Assembly (NCBI GenBank): GCA_030704615.1
Contig: CM060732.1
Location: forward strand, 16,244,001-16,308,000
From: Takakia lepidozioides
Lineage: Eukaryota > Plantae > Bryophyta
Direction of reading: 5' to 3'
DNA: 64,000 bases
The translations under genes and the position numbers were made by a program. Shown one piece after another: positions 6,428 through 64,000 of the stretch. Under the pieces are notes generated by a model, which worked only from the letters and a program-made list of their open reading frames with translations, was not told the DNA's origin and searched no databases. Within the stretch, counting starts at the first letter, position 1. Each line of letters starts with the position of its first letter.

Positions 6428-6441
6428 GAGAGGGGGAGGGG
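6428..6441 (+). other. Polypurine tract
   Basis: GAGAGGGGGAGGGG, preceded by TGAGGACACGGCTTTTT (typical Ty3/gypsy 3' end) and followed 4 nt later by TGTTA. Confidence 0.8.
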
Positions 6442-6445
6442 TAAA

Positions 6446-7671
6446 TGTTAGAGGGCTGCTTGGGACTTAGACGCTTTTACGGGTTCTGTGGGGTACCCTT
6501 AATTTTTGCGCAGACTAAGACCAACATGAGCCTTAGGGGTGGCAGCAGCAGGCTTTAGGGGGGTTACACAGCCCGACACAGCTTTACACAGCCCGTCACA
6601 GCCCGTCACAGCCAGTCACAGCCGCCACAGCCCGACACAGCCCGTCACTGCCAACACAGCCCGTCATAGCCAACACAGCCCGACACAGCCCGTCACAAGC
6701 GACCCAGCCCGACCCAGCCCGCCACAGCTTCGCACAGCCCGACACAGCCAACACAGCCAATCACAGCCCGACACAGCCTTACACAGCCAGTCACAGCTCG
6801 GCACAGCTTGACACAACCTGTCACAGTACATGGGGAACTATTATCATTGGCAGGGAAATGGCAGGGAACGACTGTGAGGGAACGACATCTGCAGAAGGAA
6901 CGTGTTACTTCAGGGATGACGGTCAATTAGTTAGTTGGTTAGAACAGCTTGCGGGCAGATAAGGGGAGCGGCAACGGAAAGATGACACTTCACGGGGAGC
7001 GCTTCTTGGTCATGTAGGAGAGGAGATTAGACGGAGAGCAAGAACAAGAGCACGGAGAAGGAGGAGAGATGAACACTAGATGCTTGTTACATGCAAAGCT
7101 GTAGTGAAACTGTAGGGCAGATTAGAGTCACCATGACATTGGCCTGATACCTGATAAATCGTAATCTGATACTTATTCGATACGAGCACACTGTGTAGAG
7201 TGACATGAGTGAAGCTGTGAAATGAATGCATGATTAATTGGAATTAAGTAGATACTGAAGCAATCTGATGCTTCAGTATCAGATAAGGTGAATTGATAAC
7301 ATGAAGGCAAGAAGGAATACAAATGGGAAGTACAACCATGATTCACTAGCTGTAGGTCATGACTGATTGTACTGAGCGGGCTGAGTGCTTAGAAATATCC
7401 AACTCTTCTATCTTGGAGTTTCCACCTCGGATAGCGAAGGGATGGGTGAGTAAAAGCCGTTCGACATGAGTCTGTGACAGGGAACAACTTATCAGGTATC
7501 TACATATGGTTGGTTAAGTGGTTGAGATATTGTGGTGCGGGGGATGCAAGTGAATCCGACAGTTGCATACGAAGCAGATTACTAAGCCGTTTGGGCTTTG
7601 TGGAGAACAATGGAACACAACGAACATGCTAGAGAGGCGACTGTGCACCGCACTCTGTTTGTGACGTAACA
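6446..7671 (+). mobile_element. 3' LTR (about 1.2 kb) of an LTR retrotransposon whose gag-pol lies left of the window
   Basis: Follows the PPT; termini TGTTA...TAACA. The partner LTR is not in the window, so the right end is inferred. Confidence 0.7.
6566..6826 (+). repeat. Roughly 10-bp minisatellite (ACAGCCCGAC/ACAGCCCGTC) inside the LTR
   Basis: More than 20 degenerate CACAGCC-core units in tandem. Confidence 0.92.
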
Positions 7672-9558
7672 TTTAAATGGTGGTCGTGCATTACAGTGTT
7701 TGTTGATCGTGGACAACATCAAAACCAAGCCTCATACTGCGGAACGACAGACGTCCTATAATGCATTCAGCGGATACGCAGAGTCATGCAAATCATTCAA
7801 TTCACTCATGCTACTGATGTAAAACATTACAGAAGAAAAGTCTCTGGCCAGTGACCAAGAACACCAACAAAACATGAAATCCAGTAGACCCAAACTGAAA
7901 TAAATCACGCCACCAAGTCTGAAACATATCGCCCCCGTTGTGTGTGTGCCTCCTATAATTATTGACCCCACAGTCTGACCCCATTGCGACCGTGCAGCGA
8001 TGGTAGCACGCCGTCCCAATGCTCGACGCCATCTGGTAGTGGAATAGAAGGCCTTGGCAATATGGTTTGTTCAGATCCACCCAATCGCACGCCAAAACAT
8101 GGCCCGACTGAAAAGAGAAATCCGGGTTACGAAGCTTCGAATATCATTGAAATGAGGTTGTAGAGACAAGTACAGACACAAAATGGAAGTGCGAAGGAGA
8201 TGCACAATTGTCACAGGTTGAAACCAATAGGACATGGGAGCTTGAGGAGGTGGTACCAAGCAGCATAACCATACAGATTGCGGGTACTTTTGCCCACATG
8301 CAGCAAGTTTCTTGCTGCAAGCGGAAAGACAGAAAAAGTGAGGGACGGCCTCCCTCCTATGGATTCCGCTCTCTCCCAACCAACAAAGGACAACTAACCT
8401 CATAGCCTACAATGGGTTCCAGTCAATCCTATATGTCATACATTCCATTGAGATCTCCAGAAAAAATAAGAAAGCTTGGAGATTTTGTTGTATCCATGCT
8501 AGGGTCCACAGTGAACATAGACATATAACCATTTACACATCCCAGGGTGGTGGTGGGGGCTGGTCTACCAGTACTCTCTGGTCAAATGCTACAGTAGGTC
8601 TGTATCAATCATATCTACCATACATTCCGTTGGGGTATCTTGATAAAATAAAATGAAATTTGCAGCATTTGTGGTATCCATCTGATTGAATTGAGTTCTG
8701 GTATTCAAATAACCACTTACACATTCAGCCAGTGCCATGGGGGGCTGTTCTAAGTAGGGGAGAGCCCATGAATTAAGCTTTTTGTATGACAAAACAACTG
8801 AGAGAACACCTGATGGTGTTCTCTCTCATGTACATATGAGAGATGACCTGCCCCAAGCTAGAACAGCAGCAGGATGAGTTAAGTGAATAATGAAGTGGTG
8901 CAAGGCCTGCAACGCCTGCAGGGCAGCAACATGGTCTTACTGAATGTACAGCTCCTTGCTTGAGCCAATCACAGATGCATGACTCTACAAGTGAGTCACA
9001 TGATATTACATGTCGGGCCCAAGACAAACTGTCCATAAAATGATAGGGAGCAAAGAACCCATAGAACCAACCAGAGCATCATCTACGCGGATTGGCAACC
9101 TCTTTTGGGCAAAAATTCAAACATGATAAGTAGGGACCAAGCTTAAAGCAGTCCACTAGTATTCAATGGTCCATAAACATGTCTCTGGCCAATATAAGAA
9201 CCCCAAAATCACTGTGGCAAGTATGTAATATTGACTGGAAAACACATGCGCACTTCCAGTTTAATTCTGTGAACAATGTACCAAGAGCCAGAATTTGTGT
9301 AAATCTGCATGACATTTCCTGCTTCTAGAGTGAGAGAAATGCCACGTCACGTTTGTGAGAGACACGCCATGTAAGTTGGATGCCTCCAACACCCTGCAAA
9401 AATGACCCCCCCCCCCCTCCCCTTGGTGCCAGTCTTACAAAGCCCACATTATAATTCAAGGAACCGAGATTACATATACAATTTTCCCCAAGACGACTCT
9501 TCATATACTCCAGATAGAAAAAGGCAGTTGGGGGGGTGATACCTCATTCCAGATACTA

Positions 9559-12500
9559 CTACACGTCCACATCAACCAGCTCATCATCACTGGATTCTGT
9601 ATCTTCATCGCAACTGTCCTCCATGGGACATGGATGTGCTTCCTCAGATCGCATGTCTCTGTAAAGTGAAGCAACCTCTTCAGGTGTCACTTGGATGGTC
9701 TGGCCCACCCTCTCACCAGCAACATTGGTCCCTTCAATCTGATTGGGGGCTAAGAGGCCTGATACACTTGCAATATCATCGTTGCAAATGCTGACATCAC
9801 AAACAGCCCTGTGTGACCTGGGGCTTTTTTCCAGCACCACATTCCATCTCGGTTCATTCACACACTCAGAAATGACCTGTGATGGGAGCCCAAAAGGTTG
9901 TTCAAGTGGAGGCAACATGTCACGGGAGAAATTCACCAACGTGAAGCCACAGTCATCTTGCTTCATTGACACAGGCTGAGAACCCACACGTCGTGCACCA
10001 TGAACACAATAGCACCGTGGTGTGTGTGGAGCCATAATCCAATTCTAAAATCTCCTTTATGACGTACGCTTTCCACCACGTGCTCACTTGAAATGCCAGA
10101 AGATTCATGCTGGAAAATAGTAGACACCCTGAGTCATATGTCACAAAGGGACTGTTCAATCCATCTGAAGTAACCTTGAAGTGGTTTCCATAAGCCGACA
10201 TGCTCTTGTATGATGTTGCGATGAATGATGGGGGTTTGGACATGTCCAACAATTCTTTGCAGATTGAATCAGATGCATGGTTGGCAACACTCGACACATG
10301 CACGCGGACAGCCGTTACTAGCCGTTCTGCAAAGTGAGGGAGAGCGCGGATCCTATTCGGATTAGCAGCATTTTCAGTGTCCACACAGGATTTCTCCACC
10401 TCATATGACCTGCCAACACACGCACCACCACATGAGTTTCTCTAGTGCAACCCCTGCAGCAAATGGAAGAACAACTGCACCCACACCTGTACAAAGCATA
10501 CCCATGCATGCATAGCCAGTGCCAGAAGTTGTGACATCCACGGGGGGGGGGGGGGGTGGTCACTTACTCCAACATAATGCTCAAACTTGGATGGTTCTGA
10601 ATGACGTAGTCGTGGACAAGCTGCAACAATTCGACGGTCAACCTCCGTGGTCGACCAAATCCTTCCAACACCCAGCCGGACACTGATTCCTCCTCTCCTA
10701 CATCCCACACTCTCCGCCTAGTAGCATCAACAGAAGATAAGTACTTTGTACAAAATCCCAGTGCCTCGTCAAACACGTAGCCCTCCGCCATACTGCCCTC
10801 AGGCTTTGCCAGGTTTTGCACATACCCTTTAAAATCCTTCATTGCTCTCTCCACCGGGTACATCCACCGAGAAGCTACAGGTCCACACAAATCCAGCTCA
10901 TACACCAAGTGGACAAGTAAATGTGTCATAACATCAAAAAAGGAGGGTGGAAACTCTTTCTCTAGAAGACAAAGAGTTATTGCCACCTCCTTCTTCAATT
11001 CCTCATGCTCGGTGGGATCAATGAATTTTGCACAAAGCTTGCAAAACACACGAGACACTCTTAGTATGGCATTGCGAACCCCAGGCGCCATTAACCCACG
11101 TAGAGCAAGTGGGAGGATCTGTTGCATGAGCACATGATAATCATGTGATTTCAATTGGCTCAACTTTTGTTTGACCACATGCTTTTTGAAGGCAGTGGCA
11201 TAGCCAGTGGGTACTTTCAGATTGGTGATAATCTCCAGGAAAACCCACTGCTCTGGTTTTGTGAGCACATATGGCGTATCAAGCATTACCAATGTATCCA
11301 CTCTAGTGGGATGACGTCGTAACCACAGTGGCTTTCGAATGCCCTGCAATTCCAGATCATGACAAACTTTCATCGTGTCCTTTTCTCTGAAAATAGTCTT
11401 GATTATGTTCTCCGTCACGTTCTTTTCGCAATGCATGGTGTCAAAAGTGTGGCGGATGAGAAGATGTTGCACCATGTCGTGTTACAAATTAGGTACTTTG
11501 CAGTGCTTTCATGAATTATGCCCACCTTAAGGTTCTGTAAACAAACGATCATGGATAATGAAAACCAATGCACTGCACTCCCCAAAACACAGGTGTGGTA
11601 ATCGCACCTCCCAGTAAGGCAAGTCAAACAGAATGGACAGTCGTTTTACACCATGGAGCTTGGAGGGGTCGTTCTCTGCGCCTGCAGCCCCACCATCATC
11701 GATCCATTGTTTGTAATGTCGTGCACGCTCCTTGATTTCGGTGGCTGTCACTGTATGTGGAGCAGGTCTCATGTCTCGCGCCCCATTAAAAAGTCTGGAT
11801 CTTCTATAGGCATGATTGTGGGGAAGATAGCGTCGATGCCCCTGGAATATCAATTTCTTACAAGCTGGGGAGTATCTGGAATCGACTTGAGGTCCACATG
11901 CTGGACAAGCAATGTACCCTTGGCAAACCTGACCTGATAGCAAGCCATAGGCGGGGAAGTCATGTATGGACCACATGAGGACTGCCCGCTCTCCTTCACT
12001 GGTTGCCACATCCAAGGCTGCAACTCCCACCCACAATGTCGCTAGCTCCTCCACAAGTGGTTGCAGGTAAACATCCACATTTTCACTTGTCATAGATTCC
12101 TTCCCAGGAATCAGGAGTGTTAACATGACAAAAAAATTCTTCGTTACCAACCATGGGGGCAAATTATAATTGAGCACCATGATGGGCCACGTGGACCAAG
12201 AAGCAGATTTTGTGCCATAAGGATTCACCCCATCCAGCGCCAATCTAAGACGCAGATTTCTTGGATCTGATGCAAACTCCGGCCATGTGTTGTCAATATG
12301 GCACCAAGCCTTACTGTCTGTAGCATGTTGGACCATGCCATCTGCACTTCTGTGATTGATGTGCCACTTCATATGCTCTGCAAGCGTCTTAGCTCGGAAC
12401 ATCTGTTTCAATCTTGGTATGAGAGGAAAGTGTCGCAACACCTTCTTGGGCACCTTTCCACGGCTGTCCATGTATCGGGGACTCTGGCACTTGGGGCAAT

Positions 12501-45816: not shown

Positions 45817-48108
45817 CTATTTCCTCACCTCATCAATGATAGCCACGGCTTCCATCCCCTTTTTAAAAAAATAAAAAAAACTATTTCTCTTTTATAAAAC
45901 TGTATAAATAATCCTAGCACGAACTACTTGTAAAGTAGTAGCATGTTGCCATGTGAATTACTACTCGCTCAATTCTCCATCGTATGTAGGTAGGTAGTAG
46001 TTGTGAGGAAAGCTGGCACGGTTGTGGCTGCTGAAGCATACCCCCTTGGTACATAGGCCCTTAGGGTCCGGGGCAGACGAACCAGTGTAGGCACTAGGCA
46101 CAGATAGCGTATGACCTTGGGACTAGTAAAAACGACACACCACATCGGCGTGAACCAGACAACATATCCCTTGGAGACAAGTCAGATACACGGGGAAACA
46201 CAGGGAGAATAGGGAGAAAAGAGTGGGTAGTCCAAGCAAGTATCTAACAACATCCTGTCCGCGGGAGGCGGATTCTGTATCTCGAACCGATTGGGTTCCT
46301 TACCTGGGTTTACTCACGTGGATTTCAGAAATAGCAGTTTTGGTGCAACTAGGGAAGAGTTTCTACACAGGGAGAGAGTACTCGTGAATAAACTGATGTT
46401 AGCTAGGAAATCGATTTAGAACGGGGTGGAGTGGATGTGCACAGGCTGAGCTTAACGAGGCGTGAAAAAGGATGAGTGAAAAATTTGGAGGTCAGGTCGA
46501 CATAAAAGGAGCTTCTCGGGATTGAACTTCCGGAGGTAAATCTTTGAGCACAAACTTCATAGGTAAAGAGTCAAAAGTCAAATAACTGTGTCCTAAGATT
46601 TTAGAGCTTGAGAGAGAATCAGAGAGAACTGAGAAATCAGGTGTTGCGGAGGTAGACGTGTTGCATGATATGCTAGAAATTAGTGTACATGCAGACTAGA
46701 AAATTAGCAGGAGCTCAGAATGGGTTAATGGCGTAGATGCTGCTGGACCATCTCTATGGAGAACTGGGACCTTTCTGTAAAACTCAGACTACATATGAGC
46801 CGCGATGATTTTAGTAGGATCAAAAAATCGTCCCATCGTGTTGGCTGTCAACGACCTCATTCTATAGGTGAATTTAGTTCCGCGGCATTTCTCTTGTTCT
46901 ATGTGCAATGGAAATATCAGCTACCTTACTAAGTAGTTCAGGGATGCAGGCAACTCCATGTAGTCTTGTGGCATGAGATGTGAGTGCATATTTTTGCAGT
47001 TGTTAGAGTGGAACAAACTGGAAGAGTGGTATCTTTTCTATAGCTCCTAAGTGGGATGCTGAAAAATGTGTAATCTATATTCAAGGTGGCATGAAATGTG
47101 AGTTCAGGTCTTGTAAACAAGTTTTAGCAGGATGCTTCAGATGCCTCGCGAAACACAGATGTTAAGGATGACCCCAACATAGCTGTTGGGAATGACTTTC
47201 ATTCACTATGTCAGAGTTAGTGAAGGATTTGGATCTGGAGCTAGAAGCTATGCAAAGAGTGAGATTTTCAGTGAAGGAGTTAGAGCTAGAAGTGCAGCAC
47301 GGAGGTCTGAAAGGAAATAATGTATCCTATGGATGCCATGAGTTGGTTCCAGGGGAAGCCTTCATGATACAAAAGCCTTATTCCCAGGTGACACTCACTC
47401 ATCAAGCATGATGCAACCTGATGATCCCTGTAGTTGCAACAGATTGCAGGAGTAAGACCTGATGGTCTGATTTTCCATCAGTATGTGTGATTAAGACAAG
47501 TGAGCCAAGCTCTCCTATGATTGGAACTCTCTCACTCGGTAAACCCCTCCCTGTTCTGGACTTGCCATGGGCTGCATACTTGTTTCGTTTATGCATCTCT
47601 TCAAGGCCCTAGCGTGCTATAGTTTGTATCTATCTATTAGTTACTTGTTCTGGAGTGAAGCCAACCAAAACCAGTTTCTATGTTCTGTTTTAATTTTTTT
47701 TTCTAATTCTTAAAGCCCATTTGGAAATGAACAGGCACTGTGCGATACACTTGGTTCTCTCAGTGGTTTTGTGAGTGTCAGTGTGTCTGAGTGAGGGACG
47801 GATAGACCATGCAATTGTGTGGCCCAGGTGTGGTATAGCCTTCCATGTCTTTCTGCTGCATGCCTCCTTCAAATGGCAAGATGACAGAGGTTTGCCGAAG
47901 TGGTTTCTGCACATAACTGAGGCATAGACATATGGCTTGGTTTGTGGGCTAAGCTCCTGCGAGTGTTTCTCTCACCCCTTCAGTGTTGTCTGGCTCAAAG
48001 CTATTGGGCTGCCAAAGCGCATGTGCATGCAAACCCCCCTTGCAGCCTAGACTCCCATGATTTGAGGCCACAAGGCAGATTAAGGCACATCCGAGACAAT
48101 GAGAGAGA

Positions 48109-51100
48109 TTGTACTCATAAGACGTTGTTTGCCGTAGCCTTGTGGCCATTGACCCCGCGCCCAGTTTGAGCGGGAACAAAAGGGACAGAACCTACCTCTG
48201 TCAGGGGCTGACGTTGGTAGTAAGACTTACCTCCATATAAAGAATTAATCCGGGTTTTCCAGATATCCTCTAGAAATCCCTTCACACAAGCATCAATCTG
48301 CTGTGTGTGATTTGCCCAAAAACTAGGCCTCAGGAGGGCCTGGGCTTTTGGCTCAGCCTCGAGACTTTCAAAGTTGGTAAACAGGGGTACAGGCACAATT
48401 CCCTTAATAGATTTGAAGAGAGCGTCTCTTTGGTGAGAGAACCCCGGACAGTGTATCAGAAAATGAATACTGTCTTCAGATTGCCCACACAACGGGCAAT
48501 TGCACTCTCCCTTTCCTCTCTGCTTCTGTTTGCTGTTCAAAGGTAGGCTTCCTGCCCTGAGTTTAAATTTCAGTCTAGTGCCGAGAGTGGGTAGACCCTT
48601 GAGGTCATCCAAGATGTCCTCCCCCATGTCACAGACTGGAAACAAGTTCAGGGAAGTTTTCTGCCTAACTTCATTTTCATCAGACAATCTCATGGCAACA
48701 GACATGGCTGAGGACACTACAGCCTCTAAGTCAGATTTATCCAGCAGGGTCAAGACTTGCGGATCCAGGTCCAGGTCCTTGAGGATCTCTTCTACTCTCT
48801 TCTGCCAGGACTTAGCCTGTTTGACAGGGCGGTCCTGTTTCCAAGATATAGAGTCGATTAACTTAGGATATCTGGTGTTGGGCATATGTTGCAGCTGACC
48901 CCACCATCTGACCTTGAATTCATCTCGTCAGGAGCTTAAGGACGGAACGCCAAACTCACCCCGAACAGCCACATTGGCTGTTTTGGAGCATGCTGACATA
49001 CACTCCTTAAGCACCCCCACTTGAATGGATTCTAGAGACTTAGCCTGGTTGGAGTTATCAACCCATATAGCAGATCCGTACTCCAAGGCAGGTCTAATAA
49101 CGCGACAAAGCATGGTTTTCTTAACCTCAGAGTTGACCCCTCTGCAGTGGAAAAATTTAGTGAGCCCCAGAGCTTTGCCCTTGCCAGTTTGAACAACTTT
49201 CCGGATATGTGCATCCCAATTACAATTGGAGGAGAACTCAACGCCCAGGTAAGTGTAGGAAGGGAGGACCGGGATCTCTTGGCTACCCCACTGCCACTTA
49301 AGATCACTTCCTCCCTCTCCTCTGTCGTTGAATGCTACCACTGCACATTTGCTGACATTAGCCTCTAGCCCCCAAAGATCAAAGTATCTCTTCGCGCAAT
49401 CAATCAACTCCTGGAGATTGGTTGGAGTCTCCCCTATGCCTGCAAAGTCATCCGCAAACATAAGGGCTGGTATGGTGGTATCACCCACCCTTAACCCAAA
49501 TCCCTCACTTTCCACATCCTCGAGGAGTTGATTGATGAAAACATTGAAGAGCAGAGGGGAGAGAGTACATCCTTGAGCTACACCTTGGTCTATGTCAAAG
49601 AAGTTGGACTTCTGTCCGTTAACAGTTACACAGCTTTTGGTGTGAGCATACAAGTTGTGGACAACTCTCCACATCTTTCCCTTGATCCCATAAGACCAGA
49701 GGCGGAACCATAGGCCATCTCTCCACACTGTGTCATAAGCCTTTTTGACATCCAGGAAAAAGACATAAGTGGGTTTCCCTTCTTTTTTCCTTCCCTGGAT
49801 AATCTGGCTTAGAGTGAAGATATGATCCACACAGCCCCTGTTTCGCCGAAAGCCAGCTTGGCCTTCGTGGAAACAACCTCTAGACTCCAGATCAACCTCG
49901 AGACGAGTACTTATAACTCTGCAGAATGTCTTGCCAACAGCATTGAGGAGCGTGATGCCACGGTAGTTCCCCGGTTCTTCTCTGTCACCCTTCCTGTATA
50001 GATTGACAATGACCCCCTGTCGCCAGCGAAAGGGGATCATTTCAGTCTTCCAGATAAGGTTAAAGAGGAGAACTAGGGCCTCTATCATGGGATCGCCACC
50101 GTGCTTGATAAGCTTGTTGACAATACCATCAGGTCCACCAGCTTTATATCCATTTAAATGTTCAATTCCTTCCACAATCTCAGAAGAACTAATGGGAGCA
50201 TTATAAGCCATTGAAATATACTCCAGTTCATCAGGGCTGTTTTGAATCATAGGAACAGTTTTTCCAAGTGTGTCCCTCCATTCAGCAGAAGACCCCTCAC
50301 TGTTAGACCTAGAAGTTCTGCCAAGGATACTGTAGTGAGTTTCAAAGGTTTTGACAATGTCAACCGATGAAGTCACCACTGCACCTTTAGTAGTCTTCAG
50401 CGCTTGTACTTGCTGACCGTTTTTCGGCTTGTACAAACGTTGAAGGGCCAACCAAAATTTCTTGTCATTACCACCATGGTGGTTTGAGTTTATTTCACTG
50501 TATAACTTGTCCCAGTATAATTTCTTCTGAGACCTAACAAGCTGATTGATATCTTTACGGAGCTGGTAGTACCTCGCCCACAATTCTCTGTTGGTTTCCA
50601 AATTGCAGCACTCTTTATAGAGGGCTCGTCTCTCAGCTATCTTGAGTTTAATCTCATTAGTCCACCAATTAACTGCTCTACCGCAGACAATTAGTTTCCT
50701 CCCAATGATCTTGTCAGCCACGGAGGAAACGAAACTCTCCCAAGAGTCCACTGCTCTTTCGACTTCATTTCTTGCGTTAACAGAGCGTGACTGAAGTTCT
50801 TGGAGCGATTGGACAAAATGAGGGAGAGCCTCTTGCAAGGCCTGGACGTACTCAGCCTTGACCTCCTCATTGTGGAATTTTTCTATGCGCCACTTCCGAA
50901 TCGAACGTTTCACAGATCTCTTGGTGGTGGGAAAACACCTTTTGATCTCAGTCCAAACCAGGAAGTGGTCAGAGGTACCAATATCAGTTCTGTTGATCAA
51001 CACATTGGCACACTGGGGGAACAAAATTTTGTCCATTATGATATAGTCCACAATGGAACGTTCCCCAGTTTGGGGTTTCTCACGAGTCCACTGCACTTGG

Positions 51101-52514
51101 TCACCTCTTGTCCTGTTATTCAAGGTCAAAAGCTGAAGCTCTTCTAGACAGTTAATTAACCGTCTGCCATTAGAATTCAGCTCGTCCTCACCAAAAGGTC
51201 CAATGATATCGTCCTGATGGATCCCTTTGCCCACCCGGGCATTGAAGTCCCCCAATAGTACCACCTGACCTTTGGCAAGGAACGAAGCACAGTCCAGCTT
51301 TACATCTTCGAAGGCCTTGTCTGCGTCAGCACTAAGGGTCCCCTCTGTGGGCATGTAAACACAACCAACAAAGAGGTCCTTTGTACTCATGCCGCCCTTC
51401 AAATTCAGTTTTAGCCAGATACTATGCTCGTACCTCAAACCCTTGTTGATAATTTCACAATTGTTCTGTGGGCATGTAAACAACCGACAAAGAGGTCCTT
51501 CCTACTCACGCCGCCCTTCAATTTCAGTTTCATCCAGATACTGTGCTCATACCGCAAATCCTTGTTGATAATTTCACAACTGTCACACAAGAAATCTCGG
51601 ACAAAGAAGCCAACACCTTTTTGACCACAATTGGCAGAGGCCACCTTAAGCCCACACATCTTACCAAACCACGTATAACCGTTGACATCTCCAACCAGTT
51701 TGTCTGAAGTTTCCCATGTCTCTTGCCCTGCACAGGTATGAATACCATTTGCCTGAAGAACTTATCCCACTTCAAATTGTTTCCTAGCCCCGAGTAGTTG
51801 AAAGTGCCCAGCCGCAAGCCAGCCTTTTGCATATGGAGTGTTTGCCGTCTAGGTGGCCTATGATTGCTCCTGGACGACCAACCGATCTGCAAAGGGGGGT
51901 CAATTACCACGTGTGTAGATTTTGATCGTCTTGTGTAAACTTTGAGGATTGGCAAACTGTTCAGAGTACCATATCCTTAAGTCACTCGACGCTCAGACTC
52001 AGCACACATAGGGCAGCTAGCCTGTCTGGCTGCTTGGTATCAAGTATCAACCTCATCAAGGGCTTCAATCTGGTTAGAAACTTTCAAGTTGAAGTCCGCA
52101 CCGTTGGCTGTCTTCCTAGAGGGCCTCGTTGAATCACCAATGTCTAGAGTACCTCTTGAATCTAGTCTCGGGATGGAGCCATTAGCCACATAATCCAAGC
52201 CTAAGCTGGAGCAGGAGTTCTAAAGGACACATCGTCCATCCTGGGATTCACTTCAAAAAACTACACATGAAGCCCTAGATTTGGCATATGTAAGGAATGA
52301 CCCTCAGGGGAATCAGGGTGATTCCCGTGTAGACAAATTCTAAAGAGGGAGAGGCCCCAAACTCTCCAACAAATCCAATGTACTACCTTACCCAAAGCAG
52401 AGTGCTTCAGGTCAAAACAAACAAAGACATGAGGTCAGAAGGCCAGCGTTAGTCAGAGACCTTTATCTACTCCCATATCAAGTCCACCCAATGGCAATAG
52501 GCTTCCTAGAGGGC
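48109..52514 (-). mobile_element. LINE copy 1 (APE-RT-C-terminal CCHC; RTEX-like), near full length, chimeric 5' part, flanked by (GA)n
   Basis: APE motifs LGTFN, QETW, GVGFF, VLLGDFNARVG, SIVDYI, TSDHFLV; RT NYRGITLL, QAGFR, LDVKKAYDTV, GVAQGCTLSP, MFADD, YLG; AVRGEFG; CPLC..HFLIHC. GAGAGAGA at 48101 and (AG)9 at 52515-52532. Confidence 0.95.
48115..51483 (-). CDS. LINE endonuclease/reverse transcriptase ORF, open except for one in-frame TGA at 48928-48930
   Basis: The 851-aa and 256-aa ORFs are in the same frame, linked by SS*RDEFKVRWWGQLQH. Confidence 0.9.
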
Positions 52515-53178
52515 AGAGAGAGAGAGAGAGAGCTCTCACTGAGCAATCCCAATGACACTCAGTCACAACTATCTTTAGGCTGGCTCAAAATTTCTTGATC
52601 TTGCACAGTTGACAACAAGTGAGGAATAAGTTCAGAGTGCTGGTTTAAGGGCTGACATTGCACCATACTGGAACATCATGTTGATAGCATCACTGCTTCT
52701 GTAGCCTTCCTGAACAGAGAATTCAGACCGAATTTTACTGCCATTTGAATTTGTACATTAGGGCTATGTGGGAGAGGGGAGATGGGGAGAGGTTTTATTT
52801 CAGGGGGTGTGGGGGGAGGGACGGCGTTGATGTAGGCGGAGACTGTAGTACACAAAGTGAGAGAGTTCCAATCTTAAGAATCGAGTTGGATTTTAGACTC
52901 TGCTCTTCCCTCCCATGTTTCTCAAGGCCTTATAGTTCTCATATGAAGACTGTCTTTGTGGGTTTTCAGACATACACTGTTTTCAACATGGCGGATTGAT
53001 GTGAGTGTCTTCTGTATCCTTTGACAGGTTGGGTTCAGGGAGCGGTACAATAGAGGTGAAGAGGCAACCGGGAAATGGTGTTACATTTGCTCTGACGAAG
53101 AAGTGGAATTAGGAAAAGTGGAATTACACCTGAAGGAGAAACTGCTGCTGCATGGTTTCACTGTGATAGTTTTTGTAG

Positions 53179-56100
53179 AGTGTCCCCAGGAGTTGACATG
53201 ACACAAACAGAAAAAATGGACCTCCCAGTAGGCAGAGAGATGAAGGAAAATGAGGATAAGCTTCTACCTTCTCCTGGAGAATCTCTAGGAATGGGGCCGC
53301 CACATGGGGAAGGAGGCATTGACTCCCCTGTGGACGGTCTGACTAACAAAAGAATAGGAAGACATGAAGTGGAAGGAAGGCAGCCTTTGTCTGTAGATTC
53401 CAACTGTGAGAAAGTGGAATTGCTTGAGCAGCCTGTTGATGAAGTTATGACCGAGATGGTGGAAGTAGTCACTATGACTAAGGCAGAGAAGGTGGACGTT
53501 TTATTCACTAAGGAGGTCACACAGCAAGCCATAGAGCTTCATCCCACTTCAGAGATGTGCATAGAATCTGGATTTCTCTCTGCTGAAGGGGTGAGCGTTG
53601 ACCCACAAGGCAAACAACACAAGGGTGTCACCAATGCTGGCAGGGCTCGGGAAGGGCTTACTAATGAAGAGATGTTAAAAGGTCTGCCACAAGCTTTTGA
53701 AGGGGTGGTAGGTCCTGAGGACCAAAAGGATGATGTTTTGAATGAGGCAGAACCACTGGAAGTTGTAGTCACCAAGGAGGGTATAGCAAGGCAGCAAAGT
53801 GTGTGCTTGGAGATGGGCAGTAAAGATAGAGATGAAGCTTTGACAGTTGATATGTCCTCCAAAGTCAAAGGGATGGTAGTTGTAGTGGACGAGAATAAGT
53901 TGGACAGAAAGAATTCAGTGGCTGAGGAAGTCTTTGTAGGGCCTTGTAATGCAGCAGCAGTCCAACTGAAACATCTTGAGATAGGGCTAGAAGCCCCCTC
54001 AAAGTTATCGTTAAATGTAGGGACCTCTCAAGTAGCTCTTGACCTTGACTTGGAGAAGCCTCTTCTGTCAGACAGAAATCAGCCGGATGCGGTAGATGGA
54101 ATTGCATGGGTTCCAATGCAATCAAGTGAAATAGGGGCTGCAACACCTGTTATACTGAAGCCTGTTGAACTGGAGGGAGTCAATGTCCAAGGGGATGAAG
54201 AGGATGCAGTTGCCATGAGTGGATATGAGCATGTTCCAATGACTGGAGGGATGGCTGATTTGGAGAGTGTGTCTGTTTCTGTTATTGCAAGCCAGGCCAT
54301 TGCAGAGGACAGCATGAGGGATTTCACAGCCAATGGTAGTCCAGTAGATGAGATTGGTCAGGTCTCAGTGAATGCAAACCTTCCCAATGCAATGAATGGC
54401 ACGGAGCCTCTTCCATCAAATAGAAACAACGAGAAACATTTAGCTCCATCTGTTGATGTGGTAGAAGAACCCACTCAAGTTTCTGAATTGGGTGCAGAAA
54501 TATTAGTGGGTTCTACACCAAGTCTGATAAGTGGGCATTCTATGGGTGCTGTGGAGCCAGTTTCATCTGCGGAGCCAAATTCTAAGGCAGAACCATGGTC
54601 AGTGCCTTCCTCTGTCTTTCTGGGATGATGCACAGCAAGCCCAGGTGTGGTCTCAGATTCTTGTTTTTTGGGGGCTCAAGGGAAGTGTGTTGACTGGATA
54701 AATGCTTTTGTTTGATACTGCCCTGTCCATGGCCGTGTTCACCTCTATATCTGGCATAGCCCTATAGGGAAAGGTCGGTGCTTATGACTGTGTTTAAAGG
54801 CATAGTGACATGTAAAAGGTGCTCTGCTGAATTAGCTATGGAGAGTACATGGCTCACGCCCATGTTCTCTTAGGCTTGCTCTGGCTTTATATAGGCCGCT
54901 GATGTCATTCATTGGGGGGCGGGGGGACCACTGTAGCAGCAAAGTGACAGTGCTTGAAGAACCTTTGACAGCAACAGCTTGTGTTGGCACCACCAAAGGT
55001 TTGCTCCTCATTAGGGTCCCCTCAGTTGCTGTTAGCCTTTCATGTATGTCTGTTCCTTCCAGTTCGATTTTGATTTTAGTTTTCTATGCATTATGAGATA
55101 GGCTTTTCTTTCAGTGGCATGCATTACATGTTGCTTGAAAGTATGTATAGTGTGGGGGTCATTCGCCCACATAAATGGCATGAGTGGGGGATGGGGTTCC
55201 AAAAGAGTTCAGTTATGGCTTTATAGTTTACATGAAGTCCTGCTTTCCATGACTGTCCCCGCTGGTGAGCATCATTGTACATCTTCGAGGCCCAACTCAT
55301 CCTAGAACCGCAAGTTTGCCACTTTCTTCCCCATGCACAATCACAGAAAACCACAGTAAAATGTGTCTGTGATCAGTCCTTATGGCTGTGTTTTATACCT
55401 CCAGATTGTATTTCTTTCTCTCAGATGGGGTGGCCCAGGACATTCCAGTCAAAGTAGTGTGGAGCAAACTGACAAACCTACTACACTAAATTGGAAGGCA
55501 ATGGATGCTATACCATTGGCACAAGTGGAAGCTGTGAATGCTGTGGCTAGGTTTCATATAACAGTGCCCTGATATGACAGGAGCAACTGGAGTGAATGTA
55601 GCAGGCGAGGGTAACAGCACTTTAATGGGAAGGCCAAGTTCTGTGGAGCCCAAATCAAGAGAGAAGAAGAGAGCTCGTATGCAAGAGCCAGCAACAGTCA
55701 TGGCTCAAGTGCCCACAGCTGCTGGAGAGACACCATGTGTGTCTTCAGGGCCTTTGGTGGTCATGCCAGTAAATCCGATGCCACCAGATCCCAATGACGT
55801 TTCTTGCTATGCAACTCTGGGTCCTTCTGTTGCACCATCTCACTTTGTGTTTCATAGTTCTGCCCAGGCTACTGGGATTCAGCTTCGGGTGGACACTGAG
55901 AAGCAACTGCAACAGGCACAAACTAGTGCACAAGACGCAATGGTGACTGCAACCTCAGCCCTTGCCCAAAGCCATGTTGCATGGGCGCGCATTCAATCTC
56001 AGGATCCTTCAGATCTAGGGGCTGCGCGGGAGGCGCAGATAGCTTCGTTAGCAGCAACTGTTGCAGCTGCTGCATCAGTTGCCAAGGCTGCTGTTGAGGC

Positions 56101-59100
56101 TGCTAAAGCTATTGCGGAGGCTTCCACTGAAGCTTTCATGCAGGCTGGTCTAAGTCATGAGGGAGCTGTGATGCGAGGTTCAATTGGGTCTGGATTCATA
56201 TCACCTCAGCTTGCATTTGAGAGCACCCGGAACAGGGACCAGCAACCATCGCAGGTACGTGCTTTTGTCATGCATCAATGTTATCTCATCTTTTGTGGGT
56301 CCTTATATTTAGTAAGTAACTATGGCCCCCATTTAACCTACCGATAGGTTGAATTCTGGTTGCTGTAAATAGCATCAATTTGCAAGGGCATCAGTACTTG
56401 GGTTGGTTCTAGTGATGGAGATCCGTGCAGTTGGGGGAAGTTCCATATAATAGATGATTTGTTAACCCCCTAACCTGCACTGTTAGTTACAGGTGGAGTC
56501 CAACCTCGGATATTCTCTTCACCTAGCCAGAGGTGCTCAGTCAAATGGTCTGATGGTCAAATGGTCAGGGGGTGTGGGTAACCCTGTTAGAAGGGTCCAT
56601 TAAAATTTGGAGTGGTCTGCACAGTGCAGAATTATTGAAATAAACACAGATGGTGATGGCTGGTTACTTGAGATGGTGGGATGGTGATGGCTACGGGTCA
56701 CTCAGTAAAGATGAGGGACAGGACTGCACGTCTCATCCACGAAGGAAATTTAGACTTTTATAAACCATGATCTCAAGTTTGAAGAACCACTGTATAATTC
56801 TGAGGCCTGCATTTTGCCTGGTAGGCTGGGTGTTGTGCTTAGACCCTGGATAATATTCTTCAAAGACTGGAAACTTGTGAGTGACGTTGTATAGAGCCCA
56901 CCCCTGACTGGGTCAATAAGGGAAGTGGCTCTTGTTTAAGCTGGCTTCTGCCAAGTTTTTTCTCTCTCTCTTTTGATGTCATATATTTTTTCATTCTTAA
57001 TGGCATTCATTCTGTTATGAGAGGCTGGTTCCTGGTAGCTTTTATTTAGACTGTAGTTGTTGTGGGCTAGCTGCTATAAGAAATGAAAGGGCCTCTTGTG
57101 GTCCATACAATGGTTGTCACTGGTTACTGGTCTCAGATGTACAGAGAGAGATAAACTCCTTGGCTAGCAGTTTTCCCCTGCAGTAGCCAGTTGGCTATAG
57201 AACCTGCACCTAGTTTGACTGGTGTGGAATGCAAAGATTCAAGGAGGGATAGACAAGAAGGGGAGGGTGGGGGGAAGGAAAATGAGCTTATATTTGCCTT
57301 TTGCAGGTGGCACGTGGGAGCCTGTCTGCTGCTGCCAGAGGAAAAGCTAGGAAGAAAGCCACAACAGCTACTGTGGATACACTAGATGCGGTGGCCCAAG
57401 CAGCTGGATTGGCAGCAGAAGCTGCGTCACAAGCAGGAGCTGTTATAGCTACAGGGAACCCCCTTCTGCAGGCAGCGGGCATGGAGGGGTTCTGGAAGAC
57501 CACAGCAGAGGGGGAAGCAAATCAGCAGGGAGAAAGGGGAGTTTCCAAGAAAGGATTGTCTCATAAGGGGAAGGGAGTTAAAGGGACACCCTGTGTGAAT
57601 GGAACCACCCAAAAGCAGATAGATTCACCCCCAACAAAACCACACAAGAAGATAAATAATGCGAAGGCCAAGGAAGCTTCAGTGAAGAAAGACGGACCCA
57701 AGGCTGTATATGAAGACCAAGCAAAGGATTCTCAGATGCCAGATTTCATGGAGCTTGGATTTGGCAGTAACCCTAGAGAGAATTCAGAGATTATCGGAGA
57801 GGGATCAGTTGTTGAGGTCAGTGATTTTCATTGGCCAAGGCGCCTGGCAAGACTGTTATTTATTGTTCTAGATGGAAAAAGTGTATACTTTGGGGGATGA
57901 TGTTCTTGTTTAGGGTGACTCGGCAGGTTTGACCACAACTCTTGTCGAACAGTGCTGTTCACGAGAGGATGGTTTGTTCAGGAGTGGATAATGGTACCTC
58001 GGTCACCTCCATTTCTTAAACTGCTTAACATGTTAAACCTAAGATATCCTGTGCATGCAGGTCATGTCTGAAGAAGAGGGCCTGCGCGGTGGTTGGTTTT
58101 CTGGGAAGGTCCTTGTGATGACAGAAAAAGAAGCTTTGGTGGTTTATGATGAGCTCCTTACGGATGATGGTCTCTCTCTCTCTCTCTCTCTCTCTCCCGG
58201 AGAGAAACCCACTTATGTCTTTTTCCTGGATGTCAAAAAGGCTTATGACACAGTGTGGAGGGATGGCCTATGGTTCCGCCTCTGGTCTTGTGGGATCAAG
58301 GGAAAGATGTGGAGAGTTGTCCACAACTTGTATGCTCACACCAAAAGCTGTGTCACTGTTAACGGACAGAAGTCCAACTTCTTTGACATAGACCAAGGTG
58401 TAGCTCAAGGATGTACTCTCTCCCCTCTGCTCTTCAATGTTTTCATCAATCAACTCCTCGAGGATGTGGAAAGTGAGGGATTTGGGTTAAGGGTGGGTGA
58501 TACCACCATACCAGCCCTTATGTTTGCGGATGACTTCGCAGGCATAGGGGAGACTCCAACCAATCTCCAGGAGTTGATTGATTGCGCGAAGAGATACTTT
58601 GATCTTTGGGGGCTAGAGGCTAATGTCAGCAAATGTGCAGTGGTAGCATTCAACGACAGAGGAGAGGGAGGAAGTGATCTTAAGTGGCAGTGGGGTAGCC
58701 AAGAGATCCCGGTCCTCCCTTCCTACACTTACCTGGGCGTTGAGTTCTCCTCCAATTGTAATTGGGATGCACATATCCGGAAAGTTGTTCAAACTGGCAA
58801 GGGCAAAGCTCTGGGGCTCACTAAATTTTTCCACTGCAGAGGGGTCAACTCTGAGGTTAAGAAAACCATGCTTTGTCGCGTTATTAGACCTGCCTTGGAG
58901 TACGGATCTGCTATATGGGTTGATAACTCCAACCAGGCTAAGTCTCTAGAATCCATTCAAGTGGGGGTGCTTAAGGAGTGTATGTCAGCATGCTCCAAAA
59001 CAGCCAATGTGGCTGTTCGGGGTGAGTTTGGCGTTCCGTCCTTAAGCTCCTGACGAGATGAATTCAAGGTCAGATGGTGGGGTCAGCTGCAACATATGCC

Positions 59101-61601
59101 CAACACCAGATATCCTAAGTTAATCGACTCTATATCTTGGAAACAGGACCGCCCTGTCAAACAGGCTAAGTCCTGGCAGAAGAGAGTAGAAGAGATCCTC
59201 AAGGACCTGGACCTGGATCCGCAAGTCTTGACCCTGCTGGATAAATCTGACTTAGAGGCTGTAGTGTCCAAAGCCATGTCTGTTGCCATGAGATTGTCTG
59301 ATGAAAATGAAGTTAGGCAGAAAACTTCCCTGAACTTGTTTCCAGTCTGTGACATGGGGGAGGACATCTTGGATGACCTCAAGGGTCTACCCACTCTCGG
59401 CACTAGACTGAAATTTAAACTCAGGGCAGGAAGCCTACCTTTGAACAGCAAACAGAAGCAGAGAGGAAAGGGAGAGTGCAATTGCCCGTTGTGTGGGCAA
59501 TCTGAAGACAGTATTCATTTTCTGATACACTGTCCGGGGTTCTCTCACCAAAGAGACGCTCTCTTCAAATCTATTAAGGGAATTGTGCCTGTACCCCTGT
59601 TTACCAACTTTGAAAGTCTCGAGGCTGAGCCAAAAGCCCAGGCCCTCCTGAGGCCTAGTTTTTGGGCAAATCACACACAGCAGATTGATGCTTGTGTGAA
59701 GGGATTTCTAGAGGATATCTGGAAAACCCGGATTAATTCTTTATATGGAGGTAAGTCTTACTACCAACGTCAGCCCCTGACAGAGGTAGGTTCTGTCCCT
59801 TTTGTTCCCGCTCAAACTGGGCGCGGGGTCAATGGCCACAAGGCTACGGCAAACAACGTCTTATGAGTACAATCTCTCTCTATTTTTCTAGCCTAGGACA
59901 TGGGTGATGCCATCATGGATGACCTCAAGACTTTACCCACTCTAGGCACTAGACTGAAATTTAAACTCAGGGCGGAAAGCCTACCTTTGAACAGCAAACA
60001 GATGCAGGGAGGAAAGGGGGATTGCAAATGCCCGTTGTGTGGGCAACCTGAAGACAATATCCACTTTCTGATTCATAGTCCTGGGTACTCTCACCAGAGA
60101 GACACCCTCGTCAAATCCATCAAAGAATGGTTTCTGTACCTCTGTAAACCAACTCTGAAAATCTCGAGGCTGAGCCAAAAGCCCAGGCCCTTTTGGGATC
60201 TAGTTATTGGGCAAATCACACACAGCAGGTTGATGTTTGTGTGAAGGGATTTCTAGGGGATATCTGGAAACCTTGGATCAATTGTCTGTTTCAAGGTAAG
60301 TCACACTACCGGCATCAGTCCCTGACAAAGGTAGTTCCTGTCCCTTTGTGTTCCGCTCAAACTGGGCGCAGGGGTCAATGGCCACAAGGCTACGGCAAAC
60401 AACATCTTATGAGTGCATTCCTTTTGTAGCCTAGGGAAGCAAAGTAATCTCTCTTTTCCAGCTCTGTTTTTCGCTATCCCGTTAGTGGAGGACTACATTG
60501 AGTACACTTGTCTCTCTTGCCCCCAGCCTCAGAGCTTGTGATGGGGAAAACCTTGTGATCCATTGCGGAACTCTTACTGTGCTCCCCTACAGAAGCCTCT
60601 TTGGTGCTATATGTTGTTGGGATTGTCATTCAGCTACTTGCTTCTCAGGATCAACCATCCCTAGGGAGCAGCTCTGGCAATCTCTGGCCAAAATGCCAAC
60701 TCATGTTGAACTTTGTTGAATGATGATGCATATTTAGCATACAATTCTATATAATCTTAGGGTACCTTTCCATCTAAACCCCACTCCCCCAGGATTCGCT
60801 ATTTGGAATAATGGGTGATCACCAAAAAATAGTGGGTAAAGGGTTTCCATCTACCCAAGCATAGTGGGCACCCACTATTGGGAAATGCTGGCTAGCACTG
60901 GGAGGTTGTGTTGACAACGCGGTTACTGCAGCCAAAAGCCCACAAAGTTGCTCACCTACTATAGGGGGTGCAATGACCTACATGTTCCGGTGATCTTGAA
61001 ATAGTTGGTGCCCACTCTCCTGGTTGGTTGGGGGGCGCACCCACCAGCAGAGTGGGTGAGTAGGTGTAGATGGAATGGCACCCTTAGCTTCCATTGCTGG
61101 CACTTACAGACCAGAGATCATTGGATGAGCATAGTCCAGCATGATTATCTGGGATGTGAATCCTTTGCTCTTCAATCCAGTTCTGGAGATGTTTAGTATG
61201 AGCAGCTTAAGTAGGCTTGATTGTTTGATGTTAATCACAATTTGCGCAAGTAGCAGGAACCTACTATTTGTTTGATTCTGATAGATCATAAAATTTGTTT
61301 TAAGTATTCTTCGTGAGTTTGGAACTAGGACTTTCCTTCTGGCCTGCATAATATCTTTGCAATGATATGCCAAATTCCTATTATGAAGATGTGGCTCTCT
61401 TGCTTCAGGGGCTTCCAAGCTCAAAGAGTGGTTTCCACTCAGTGCTTCAGTAGGGGAATTGTCTGGCACTTGGCGACAAATGCGCCCAGTTCACCCTTTC
61501 AGCTTTGTTGAGGAAGCTGGCTCAAGGAAGCGACGCCGTGTAGCCATGGGCTCTCAAGCCTGGAAGATAGGAGACCATGTGGATGCCTTCATCCAGGATG
61601 G
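53179..61601 (+). CDS. SWO1: G2484-1/SWOLLEN1-like Agenet (plant Tudor) domain gene, partial. Exons about 53179-54597, (55425-)55574-56254, 57307-57816, 58061-58169, 61409-61601; continues beyond the window
   Basis: EAQIASLAATVAAAASVAKAA; LDAVAQAAGLAAEAASQAGAVIATGNPL; IGEGSVVE|VMSEEEGLRGGWFSGKVL..YDELLTDDG|ASKLKEW..RPVHP..RKRRRVAM..WKIGDHVDA. The last four exons splice in frame with GT-AG introns. 5' exons are uncertain, with a possible frameshift near 55570. Confidence 0.85.
58171..58196 (+). repeat. (TC)13 microsatellite starting within the splice donor
   Basis: GATG|GTCTCTCTC... Confidence 0.95.
58200..59872 (+). mobile_element. LINE copy 2, 5'-truncated, nearly identical to copy 1
   Basis: Same RT and C-terminal peptides as copy 1; ends TTATGAGTACAA-TCTCTCTC. 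Confidence 0.96.
59897..60420 (+). mobile_element. LINE copy 3, older 3' fragment
   Basis: MGDAIMDDLKTLPTLGTRLKFKLR..CPLC; ends TTATGAGTGCATTC; TTTT(C/G)TAGCCTAGG on both sides (TSD-like). Confidence 0.92.
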
Positions 61602-61638
61602 GTAAGAGACTCTCTCTCTCTCTCTCTCTCTGTGTGTT

Positions 61639-61672
61639 AAGGCTACGGCAAACAACGTCTTATGAGTACATT
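61639..61672 (+). mobile_element. LINE copy 4, about 34-bp 3' tip between (CT)n tracts
   Basis: AAGGCTACGGCAAACAACGTCTTATGAGTACATT follows the (CT)n at 61610-61631 and is followed by CTCTCTCTCT. Confidence 0.85.
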
Positions 61673-61680
61673 CTCTCTCT

Positions 61681-63483
61681 CTGTTCCGCTCAAACAGTGA
61701 AATCAACTCAAACCACCATGGTGGTAATGACAGGAGATTCTGGTTGGCCCTTCAACGTTTGTACAAGCTGAAAAACTGTCAGCAAGTACAAGCGCTGAAG
61801 ACTACTAAGGGTGCAGTGGTGACTTCAACGGTTGACATTGTCAAAACCTTTGAACCCACTACAGTATCCTTGGCAGAACTTCTAGGTCTAACAGTGAGGG
61901 TCCTCTGAAGAATGGAAGGACACAATTGGAAAAACTGTTCCTATTATTCAAAACAGCCCTAATGAACTGGAGTATATTTCAAAGGCTTACAACGCTCTCG
62001 TTAGTTCTTCTGAGATTGTGGAAGCAAGTGAGCATTTAAACGGATATAAAGCTGGTGGACCTGATGGCATAGTCAACGAGCTTGTCAAGCACGGTGGCGA
62101 TCCCATGATAGAGGCCCTAGTTCTCCTCTTTAACCTTATTTGGAAGACTGAAATGATCCCCTTTCACTGGTGACAGGGGGTCATTGTCAATCTATACAAG
62201 AAGGGTGACAGAGAAGAACCGAGGAACTACCGTGGCATCACGCTCCTCAATGCTGTTGGCAAGATATTTTGCAGAGTTATAAGTACTCGGCTCGAGGTTG
62301 ATCTGGAATCTAGAGGTTGTTTCCACGAAGGCCAAGCTGGCTTTCGGTGAAACAGGGGCTGTGTGGATCATATCTTCACTCTAAACCAGATTATCCAGGG
62401 AAGGAAAAAAGAACAGAAACCCACTTATGTTTTTTTCTTGGATGTCAAAAAGGCTTATGACACAGTGTGGAGAGATGGTCTATGGCTCCGCCTCTGGTCA
62501 TGTGGGATCAAGGGAAAGATGTGGAGAGTTGTCCATAACTTGTATGCTCACACCAAAAGTTGTGTCACTGTTAATGGACAGAAGTCTAACTTCTTTGACA
62601 TAGACCAAGGTGTAGCTCAAGGATGTACCCTCTCCCCTCTGCTCTTCAATGTTTTCATCAATCAACTCCTCGAGGATGTGGAAAGTGAGGGATTGGGGTT
62701 AAGGGTGGGTGATGCCACCATACCAGCCCTTATGATTGCGTATGACTTCGCAGGCATAGGGGATACTCCTTCCAACCTCCAGGAGTTGATTGACTCCAAC
62801 CAGGCGAAGTCTCTAGAATCCATTCAAGTGGGGGTGCTTAAGGAGTGCATGTCAGCATGCTCCAAAACAGCCAATGTGGCTGTTTGGGGTGAGTTTGGCA
62901 TCCCTTCCTTAAGCTCCCGATGAGATGAATTCAAGGTCAGATGGTGGGTTCAGCTGCAACACATGTCCAACACCAGATATCCTAAGTTAATGGACTCTAT
63001 ATCTTGGAAACAGGACCGCCCTGTCAAACAGGCTAAGTCCTGGCAGAAGAGAGTAGAAGAGATTCTCAAGGATCTGAATCTGGATCCGCAAGTCTTGACC
63101 CTGCTGGATAAATCTGACTTAGAGGCTGTAGTGTCCAAAGCCATGTCTGTTGCCAGGAAATTGTCTGATGAAAATGAAGTTAGGCAGAAAACTTCCCTGA
63201 ACTTGTTTCCAGTCTGTGACATGGGGGAGGACATCATGGATGACCTCAAGGGTCTACCCACTCTCGGCAGGAAGCCTACCTTTGAACAGCAAACAGAAGC
63301 AGAGAGGAAAGGGAGAGTGCAATTGCCCGTTGTGTGGGCAACCCGAAGACAATATTCATTCTCTCTAGTCCTACTACTGGAGTGAGCCCTCAGAAAGGTA
63401 GTGTATGTTCCCTCTTGTTCCGCCCGAACCGGGCACAGGGTCTGTGGCCACAAGGCTACGGCAAACTTCTTATGAGTACATTC
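61681..63483 (+). mobile_element. LINE copy 5, older, 5'-truncated, with internal deletions and stops
   Basis: Homologous to copy 1 from about 50500 to the 3' end; deletions near 62792 and 63268; ends TTATGAGTACATTCTCTTGCTCTCTCTC. Confidence 0.93.
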
Positions 63484-64000
63484 TCTTGCTCTCTCTCCCT
63501 CTTTCCTTTTCTCAATGATAGTCATGCTTTCTGTATAATATTAAGCTCCACACTTCCTGACAGTTCCTGACAAAGCTTTTCATGCTATGAGAGTGTTGGG
63601 GATTTATCACCGTCAAGCTACAGCCTCCGTGACTTTAACATTGTAATCATATCCATTTGAGTCTTACACAAAGTTTCAAGTTTCCTGAACCCAACATGTA
63701 CTGTGTTTTGACTTCAGGTGGTGGGAAGGCGTTGTGAAAGAACTGAATGACGTGGATGAAAGCAAGATCACTGTTTACTTTCCAGGTATTCACATCAAAC
63801 ATATGACAATGCCCTTTGCCAGATGTCCCCGATAGACCACTGGCTCTGAGGATCATAGGCTATAAATATGAATTGCAGCGCTCTCGATGTCAGACCAAGC
63901 ACTACTTCAGCATGGAGGAAATTTTGATTGTGGGCTTGTAAGTTGGGATTGTTCTTTATCTCATGGCTTTCCAGCAATATGGCTCAACCTCATTATTCCT

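Follow-up and report, generated by a model that had tools for sequence, protein, structure and literature searches.

A very high-copy LINE family of RTE-X type in a bryophyte-like land plant, with a probable preference for TCT in CT tracts

The RTE-X elements of the brown alga Ectocarpus are the closest described precedent for the long interspersed nuclear element (LINE) family considered here. They were curated as elements with a single open reading frame (ORF) for endonuclease and reverse transcriptase (EN-RT), (C)n 3' termini and C-rich target duplications (PMC12477816). LINE/RTE-X elements have also been annotated in Marchantia, with accumulation near centromeres and nothing on target sequence (bioRxiv 10.1101/827881). 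In other clades, the fish LINEs Kibi and Koshi, two-ORF members of Tx1, are described as strictly specific for (TC)n and (TTC)n microsatellites, respectively (Kojima and Fujiwara 2004, as summarised in PMC3812793), and Waldo/Mino (R1 clade) and Dong (R4 clade), from insects and snails, insert in (ACAY)n, (AC)n and (TAA)n (PMC3812793). Here we analyse five copies of a LINE family in 64 kb of Takakia lepidozioides DNA (assembly GCA_030704615.1, contig CM060732.1, positions 16,244,001 to 16,308,000 of the forward strand). This whole stretch is called the window, and coordinates are counted from its first letter. The copies probably belong to a young, very high-copy RTE-X-type family of a bryophyte-like land plant that lands preferentially at TCT in CT tracts.

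Compared with RTEX-1_Ec32 and RTEX-2_Ec32 of Ectocarpus, this family has the same single EN-RT ORF, CCHC motif and GR(G/V)VNG motif, the same lack of poly(A), and likewise a terminus and target duplication of like composition. Very high copy number, and truncated or non-autonomous derivatives with a common 3' end, are further shared traits (PMC12477816). The two differ in the junction, which is TCT/(CT)n rather than (C)n, and in the host, a land plant rather than a brown alga. The likeness to Kibi and Koshi, as those elements are summarised, lies in an apurinic/apyrimidinic endonuclease-type (APE-type) element with the same dinucleotide repeat on both sides and in one orientation; the differences are another clade, one ORF and a genome-wide common denominator that appears to be TCT in pyrimidine-rich DNA. 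Waldo/Mino and Dong are similar in inserting into simple repeats and lacking poly(A), and different in clade and repeat. Literature searches on RTE-X elements, which covered microsatellites, target specificity, mosses and Chlamydomonas, returned no description of a CT-targeting plant LINE, in keeping with an earlier note on this DNA that knew of no such plant family.

Insertion sites of the five copies

A BLASTN search seeded with copy 1 places five copies of a single LINE family in the window, one on the minus strand (~4.4 kb) and four on the plus strand, all four 5'-truncated; sensitive BLASTN, and TBLASTN with relatives, detected no further copies in the remaining 48 kb of the window. Copy 1 (48109–52514, minus) is near full-length and defective, and its length matches that of two relatives, L003 and L004 (4.4–4.5 kb). 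Copy 2 (58201–59872, plus; 1.67 kb) is 99.6% identical to copy 1 and has a few filler bases at its 5' junction. Copy 3 (59884–60418, plus) is older, with 85% identity to copy 1, and its 5' boundary is ambiguous between 59884 and 59898, where the flanking repeat overlaps a stretch partly homologous to the element. Copy 4 (61639–61671, plus) is a 33-nt fragment of the 3' end, and copy 5 (61683–63481, plus) is 91–94% identical to copy 1, has internal deletions and is followed by a CT-rich tract.

All copies have the same 3' end, as the earlier note proposed and as motif search and BLASTN both confirm. A 27-nt 3' motif was found with at most one mismatch at 48113–48139 (minus) and at 59842–59868, 60388–60414 and 61641–61667 (plus), four matches versus none expected by chance from shuffled sequence, and copy 5 (end 63481) carries the same motif minus 3 nt. 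The ORF ends ...ATANNVL and TGA, and the element ends 7 nt later (about 6 in the earlier note), with no A run or poly(A) seen at the 3' ends of the copies. The terminal sequence is ...GAGT(A/G)CA(A/T) throughout. It is followed by TCT in copies 1, 2, 4 and 5 and by TCC in copy 3; the earlier note had four copies running straight into CT.

The window contains only three CT/AG tracts of at least 12 nt, and each lies directly 5' of a copy with CT on the sense strand of that copy, as had been noted for copies 1, 2 and 4. An 18-nt (CT)n tract (52515–52532, minus) directly precedes copy 1, and contigs from the unique flank cross it into the element. A 26-nt (TC)n tract (58171–58196, plus) directly precedes copy 2 and begins 2 nt past a host splice donor, and a 22-nt (CT)n tract (61610–61631, plus) lies 5' of copies 4 and 5 and begins 8 nt past another. 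The next-longest CT/AG runs measure 8–11 nt and are mostly those after the 3' ends of the copies. All five copies (5/5) landed within a CT tract or at its edge, whereas only 3.1% of the 1,948 TCT sites outside LINE bodies fall within runs of (CT)4 or longer, so the clustering of junctions in such runs goes far beyond chance and is not the product of a simple TCT rule. We considered copy 3 as an insertion away from CT and rejected this reading, since the 5' copy of its flanking repeat adjoins the 26-nt tract and the element hence landed at the tract edge.

The CT run after the 3' ends is duplicated target DNA and not an added tail, because both flanks share direct repeats, some of which include non-CT bases. 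Copy 1 is immediately followed by (TC)4 (48101–48108, minus) and copy 2 by (TC)4T (59873–59881, plus); we read these runs as the 3' copies of target duplications of 8 nt and 9 nt, respectively. Copy 4, with (TC)5T after its end, lies between the two copies of a 13-nt direct repeat, (TC)5TGT (61621–61633 and 61672–61684, plus), which takes in non-CT bases; copy 5 is followed by TCTCT and then the CT-rich tract. Copy 3 is flanked by a 14-nt direct repeat, read by eye and identical at 13 of 14 positions (59884–59897 and 60422–60435, plus), which when extended to 17 nt begins with the TCC at 60419 and continues into T-rich sequence. This repeat might have been mere element sequence, a reading we rejected by eye on the grounds that at four positions its two copies match each other but not the element. 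Copy 3, which has no CT run, also shows that none is added where the target has no CT.

It is accordingly very unlikely that the CT run is an element-encoded or reverse transcriptase-added tail and that integration is essentially random, although a short CT run does follow four of the five copies and the relatives bear simple-repeat tails. The long CT tracts are on the 5' side, an impossible place for a tail; direct repeats join the CT run to non-CT target bases; in copy 3 the duplication follows the element end without a CT run in between; and random integration would not be expected to put two copies a few base pairs apart and in one orientation. The duplications and the 5' tracts together thus contradict a tail as the sole source of the CT, a possibility that the earlier note had raised.

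Two of the tracts each took two copies, in the same orientation and a few base pairs apart, with the younger copy upstream both times. Identity to copy 1 is 99.6% for copy 2 against 85% for copy 3 at the first tract, and 97.6% for copy 4 against 91–94% for copy 5 at the second. Copy 3 landed at the right-hand edge of the 26-nt tract; copy 2, which is much younger, inserted later and within the tract. At the 22-nt tract, the duplication of copy 4 takes in the first 2 nt of copy 5, and copy 4 therefore arrived after copy 5, in the CT tract 5' of the older copy. The duplications of copies 1, 2 and 4 end at, or no more than 2 nt from, the right-hand boundary of the tract, so that most of the tract stays 5' of the new copy and open to another insertion. 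These relationships support the view that the CT tracts of the window serve repeatedly as landing sites, with a single orientation throughout.

The same arrangement could arise if insertion itself made or expanded the long 5' tracts, through template jumps onto CU-rich RNA ends and slippage, the true target being a short TCT-type site. The 64 kb hold no LINE-free CT tract of at least 12 nt, and in every case the 5' tract far exceeds the 3' run in length. Template switching has a candidate instance in copy 5, whose first 13 nt (61683–61695) are identical to the element 3' region and are joined to element position ~2040, ~2.3 kb upstream; the joint looks like a template switch during reverse transcription, and tandem mini-copies occur genome-wide. 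We nevertheless regard the creation of tracts by insertion as improbable. Two tracts lie directly at the starts of host introns, 2 and 8 nt past the splice donors; copies 3 and 5, which are older, already occupied these tracts when copies 2 and 4 inserted; and the 13-nt duplication of copy 4 represents 11 nt of CT that were already in the target.

Architecture, clade and 3' end

The full element is ~4.4 kb long with one ORF, which comprises an N-terminal region, an APE endonuclease, a reverse transcriptase, a CCHC knuckle and the GR(G/V)VNG motif. Copy 1 (48109–52514, minus) has this layout, with a 5' leader of ~180 nt and the C-terminal motif in the form GRGVNG. Its single ORF is broken by a stop, frameshifts and a duplication, and is otherwise collinear with that of relatives; the alignment of the single-ORF relatives P0002 and P0003 to copy 1 begins at residue ~172. 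Pfam detects Exo_endo_phos_2 and RVT_1. The duplication is an internal tandem of ~120 bp in the endonuclease-coding region (51344–51583, minus; 88% identical), over which contig depth dips. The premature TGA (48928–48930, minus) is common to copies 1 and 2 and is CGA in nearly all family contigs (48930 A>G). The two copies thus represent a defective lineage that still moved, presumably in trans.

The nearest proteins in a large collection are 41–44% identical and are encoded as single ORFs of 1,340–1,423 aa, which occupy contigs of 4.4–4.5 kb or lie in large contigs with animal-type neighbours (Calx-beta arrays, a furin-type protease). The single ORF of these relatives starts ~200–260 nt from the 5' end, leaving no room for a separate ORF1. 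A 135-aa C-terminal query had no match in the protein collection, a PDB search gave only generic similarity to L1 ORF2p and R2, and the ESM Atlas gave generic EN-RT clusters. After the reverse transcriptase, the window ORF encodes a CCHC motif of the form C-x2-C-x7-H-x4-C, with GRGVNG a few residues before the stop. Printed sequences were compared by eye: RTEX-1_Ec32 and RTEX-2_Ec32 share this CCHC and have a C-terminal GRVVNG a few residues before the stop, and RTE-1/2_Ec32 have neither (PMC12477816, supplements 2 and 3).

Architecture and motifs therefore support a putative assignment to RTE-X, as a poly(A)-less APE-type LINE with a single EN-RT ORF, the CCHC and GR(G/V)VNG motifs, and a short or simple-repeat terminus that matches the duplication in composition. 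The earlier note had proposed an RTEX-like plant LINE with parallels in Tx1 Kibi/Koshi and R1 Waldo. The RTE-X type is retained, whereas the parallels are functional only and the element's own clade offers the closer precedent. A place in Tx1, which would make the family the plant equivalent of the (TC)n-specific Kibi, would account for a CCHC after the reverse transcriptase, as in L1/Tx1, and for the association with TC repeats. It is nonetheless extremely unlikely, given that the two-ORF layout of Tx1 (ORF1 plus an APE-RT ORF2) is not found here, that there is no separate ORF1 and the relatives are single ORFs, and that the terminal GRVVNG-type motif, the stop at the extreme 3' end and the simple-repeat termini match curated RTE-X.

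The RTE-X-type assignment is accompanied by a conserved RNA structure near the 3' end. A stem-loop of 3 bp, a bulge, 5 bp and a tetraloop lies ~22 nt before the element end and overlaps the last codons. It is at 59828–59850 (plus) in copy 2, and its coordinates were transferred from there to copy 1 (48131–48153, minus). Three copies from the plant were aligned with five relatives (a six-sequence version was also made): 98.4% of cells are paired, compensatory changes occur in two pairs (CG/AU/GC and CG/UA), and no shuffle out of 500 gave as high a covariation score. The stem lies over conserved codons, so some of this conservation may reflect the protein. Folds of the whole 3' region show no extra stability over shuffles (z −0.4 to −1.9), and only the short hairpin is supported, by covariation. 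Two features of stringent-type LINEs are thus present, a covarying 3' stem-loop and mobilised defective copies (1 and 2) with a shared 3' end, and the element protein would be expected to bind this structure.

The 3' ends of relatives place the CT junction in a wider series. These relatives (L001–L008; 31–44% protein identity) come from ENA, JGI and Logan contigs with animal-type genes. The stem-loop is kept in them, together with an ATGAG-type end in L001 and L005, only TTGAGTA in L002 and L003, and neither in L006. L001 has a T/A-rich end and a 17-nt duplication starting TATT, L002 has (TTA)n and a 15-nt duplication starting TATTA, and L003, L005 and L006 have (TTA)n, (CA)n and (TAA)n, respectively; (TTA)n and (ATCA)n were found at the 5' flanks of L004 and L008. 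The duplications of 15–17 nt start in register with the terminal repeat. Like L001–L006, the plant family has the stem-loop, ~15 nt and then its end, a stop at the extreme 3' end and comparable duplications; unlike them, it does not terminate in (TTA)n, (CA)n or (TAA)n. Judged from these alignments, the TCT/(CT)n of the plant family is one more state of the terminal-repeat pattern of its relatives. Flanking by a lineage-specific simple repeat seems to be general in the clade.

Genome-wide contigs and genomic surroundings

For a view beyond the window, one set of de Bruijn contigs, from four runs of this organism (two of DNA, two probably of RNA), was aligned to 47700–52750. Summed contig depth, which is not a copy number, is ~640,000–840,000 at the 3' end of the element, falls steadily to ~5,000–10,000 at its 5' end and is ~25 in the unique flanks. 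Genome-wide, the abundance of the family is clearly very high, and most of its copies, with truncated ones in the thousands in these contigs, lack the 5' part. Many contig joints return to 48101–48104, where a truncated copy stands directly behind the end of another copy and a short CT run, sometimes with a few filler bases; the joints include mini-copies of 40–50 nt. Tandem mini-copies of this size in the contigs suggest that template-switch events like that of copy 5 are common. The 3' 27-mer had no match in metagenome contigs.

Loose contig ends were read from the best-supported 24 of about 2,500 and are indicative only. Among these 24, the main 3' loose ends are at 48106, just past TCT (84–86 contigs per DNA run), and at 48110, where last-base variants diverge. 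The consensus of the continuations is weak (agreement 0.36–0.5) and purine-rich on the plus strand, that is, pyrimidine-rich and T-rich in the sense of the element; the loose ends at 48103–48104 have a CT-rich continuation. This view is indicative of TCT in pyrimidine-rich DNA as the genome-wide common denominator, with perfect (CT)n a favoured special case rather than a requirement. Contigs that diverge just past TCT have a plurality continuation starting ATTC in three of the four runs, and copies 1 and 2 also have ATT after their CT run. This ATTC may come from slippage on the terminus of the element (...ATTCT), or it may mark an additional target preference.

These flanks bear on the proposal of the earlier note that the element is sequence-specific for (CT)n, which in its strict form would have the endonuclease recognise (CT)n/(AG)n itself and would put practically every insertion inside a CT microsatellite, as with Kibi in fish. 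All five window insertions in or at CT tracts, and the occupation of all three long tracts, are what such an enzyme would produce. Strict microsatellite specificity is still quite unlikely, as the commonest divergence of 3' flanks is just past TCT, with heterogeneous, T-rich continuations (0.36–0.5, among the same 24 best-supported ends) and not (CT)n, and as the duplication of copy 3 is mostly non-CT. The association with CT tracts in the window stands; against strict specificity weigh the contig flanks, which share only TCT among these best-supported ends, and copy 3, with its TCC and T-rich sequence. What the data bear out is a preference of the family for CT tracts.

In the probable RNA runs (X5 and X6, for which the RNA label is a guess), summed depth at the LINE 3' end is ~12,000–52,000, with unique flanks near zero. 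The LINE family, or host transcripts containing it, may be abundantly transcribed. About half of the words of the host gene region are also present in the probable RNA runs.

Copies 2–5 sit in introns of a plus-strand gene, in sense orientation. The gene is of Agenet type, based on a host exon at 58061–58166 (plus; limits by eye) with a Pfam Agenet match (E 1.2e-05) just under the cut-off, host exons having been searched singly. This match marks the host as plant-like. Two of its introns (58167–58196 and 61602–61631) open with GT and then a long CT tract, 2 nt and 8 nt past the donor, respectively, and both intron tracts bear stacked LINE copies in sense orientation. Just outside the 5' flank of copy 1, at 52760–52830, is a G-rich low-complexity stretch (GGGGAGAGG-type).

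Proposed mechanism and significance

Preferential landing at TCT in CT tracts can be arranged as a series of steps. The element protein would bind the stem-loop that is conserved within the final 50 nt of its RNA, and its endonuclease would nick the purine-rich bottom strand before a top-strand TCT, preferably in or at a CT tract. The freed ...AGA-3' would then pair with the U/C-rich 3' end of the RNA and prime reverse transcription; TCT lies after each source copy, and a read-through RNA would carry TCT at its end. No tail is added, as the flanking duplications show. Synthesis usually aborts, yielding the 5'-truncated copies that are seen. A top-strand cut 8–17 nt downstream would give the observed duplications, which start with TCT. 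The bulk of the CT tract would be left 5' of the new copy and available for re-insertion, with newer copies upstream of older ones, the order found at two loci. Defective RNAs would be moved in trans, as the stop common to copies 1 and 2 suggests.

Several points weigh against this account as a whole. CT extends over 18–26 nt on the 5' side of the copies versus 8–11 nt on the 3' side, an asymmetry that the proposed steps leave unexplained, and the long 5' tracts are only presumed to have pre-existed the copies. The genome-wide view comes from one contig set, from the best 24 of about 2,500 loose ends and from a depth that is not a copy number. The clade call draws on architecture and on motifs from a paper's supplement, and the specificity of the endonuclease and the pairing of RNA and target are proposals made from sequence.

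It is possible, and we suggest it tentatively, that across RTE-X the landing site depends mostly on how well the nicked target can base-pair with the RNA nucleotides that follow the hairpin and the ATGAG-type end. If so, a change in the terminal nucleotides (UCU in the plant; UAU/UUA, CA or UAA in the animal-type relatives; C in the brown alga) would retarget a family, and the plant family would be one state of a programmable target preference that is RNA-guided rather than endonuclease-encoded.

The preference for CT tracts in a land plant would represent an apparently unreported case of a habit already described for relatives in algae and animals and for LINEs of fish and insects, and it would call for no new mechanism. 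If the preference holds genome-wide, land-plant LINE insertion sites would be predictable, at TCT in CT tracts and on one strand. It would also explain a pile-up of copies in sense orientation in pyrimidine-rich introns, the CT tracts beside LINE ends, and ordered head-to-tail stacks. The comparison across the clade suggests a simple rule, in which the last nucleotides of the RNA correspond to the target motif, and this rule may bear on how a target preference arises or changes in APE-type LINEs.

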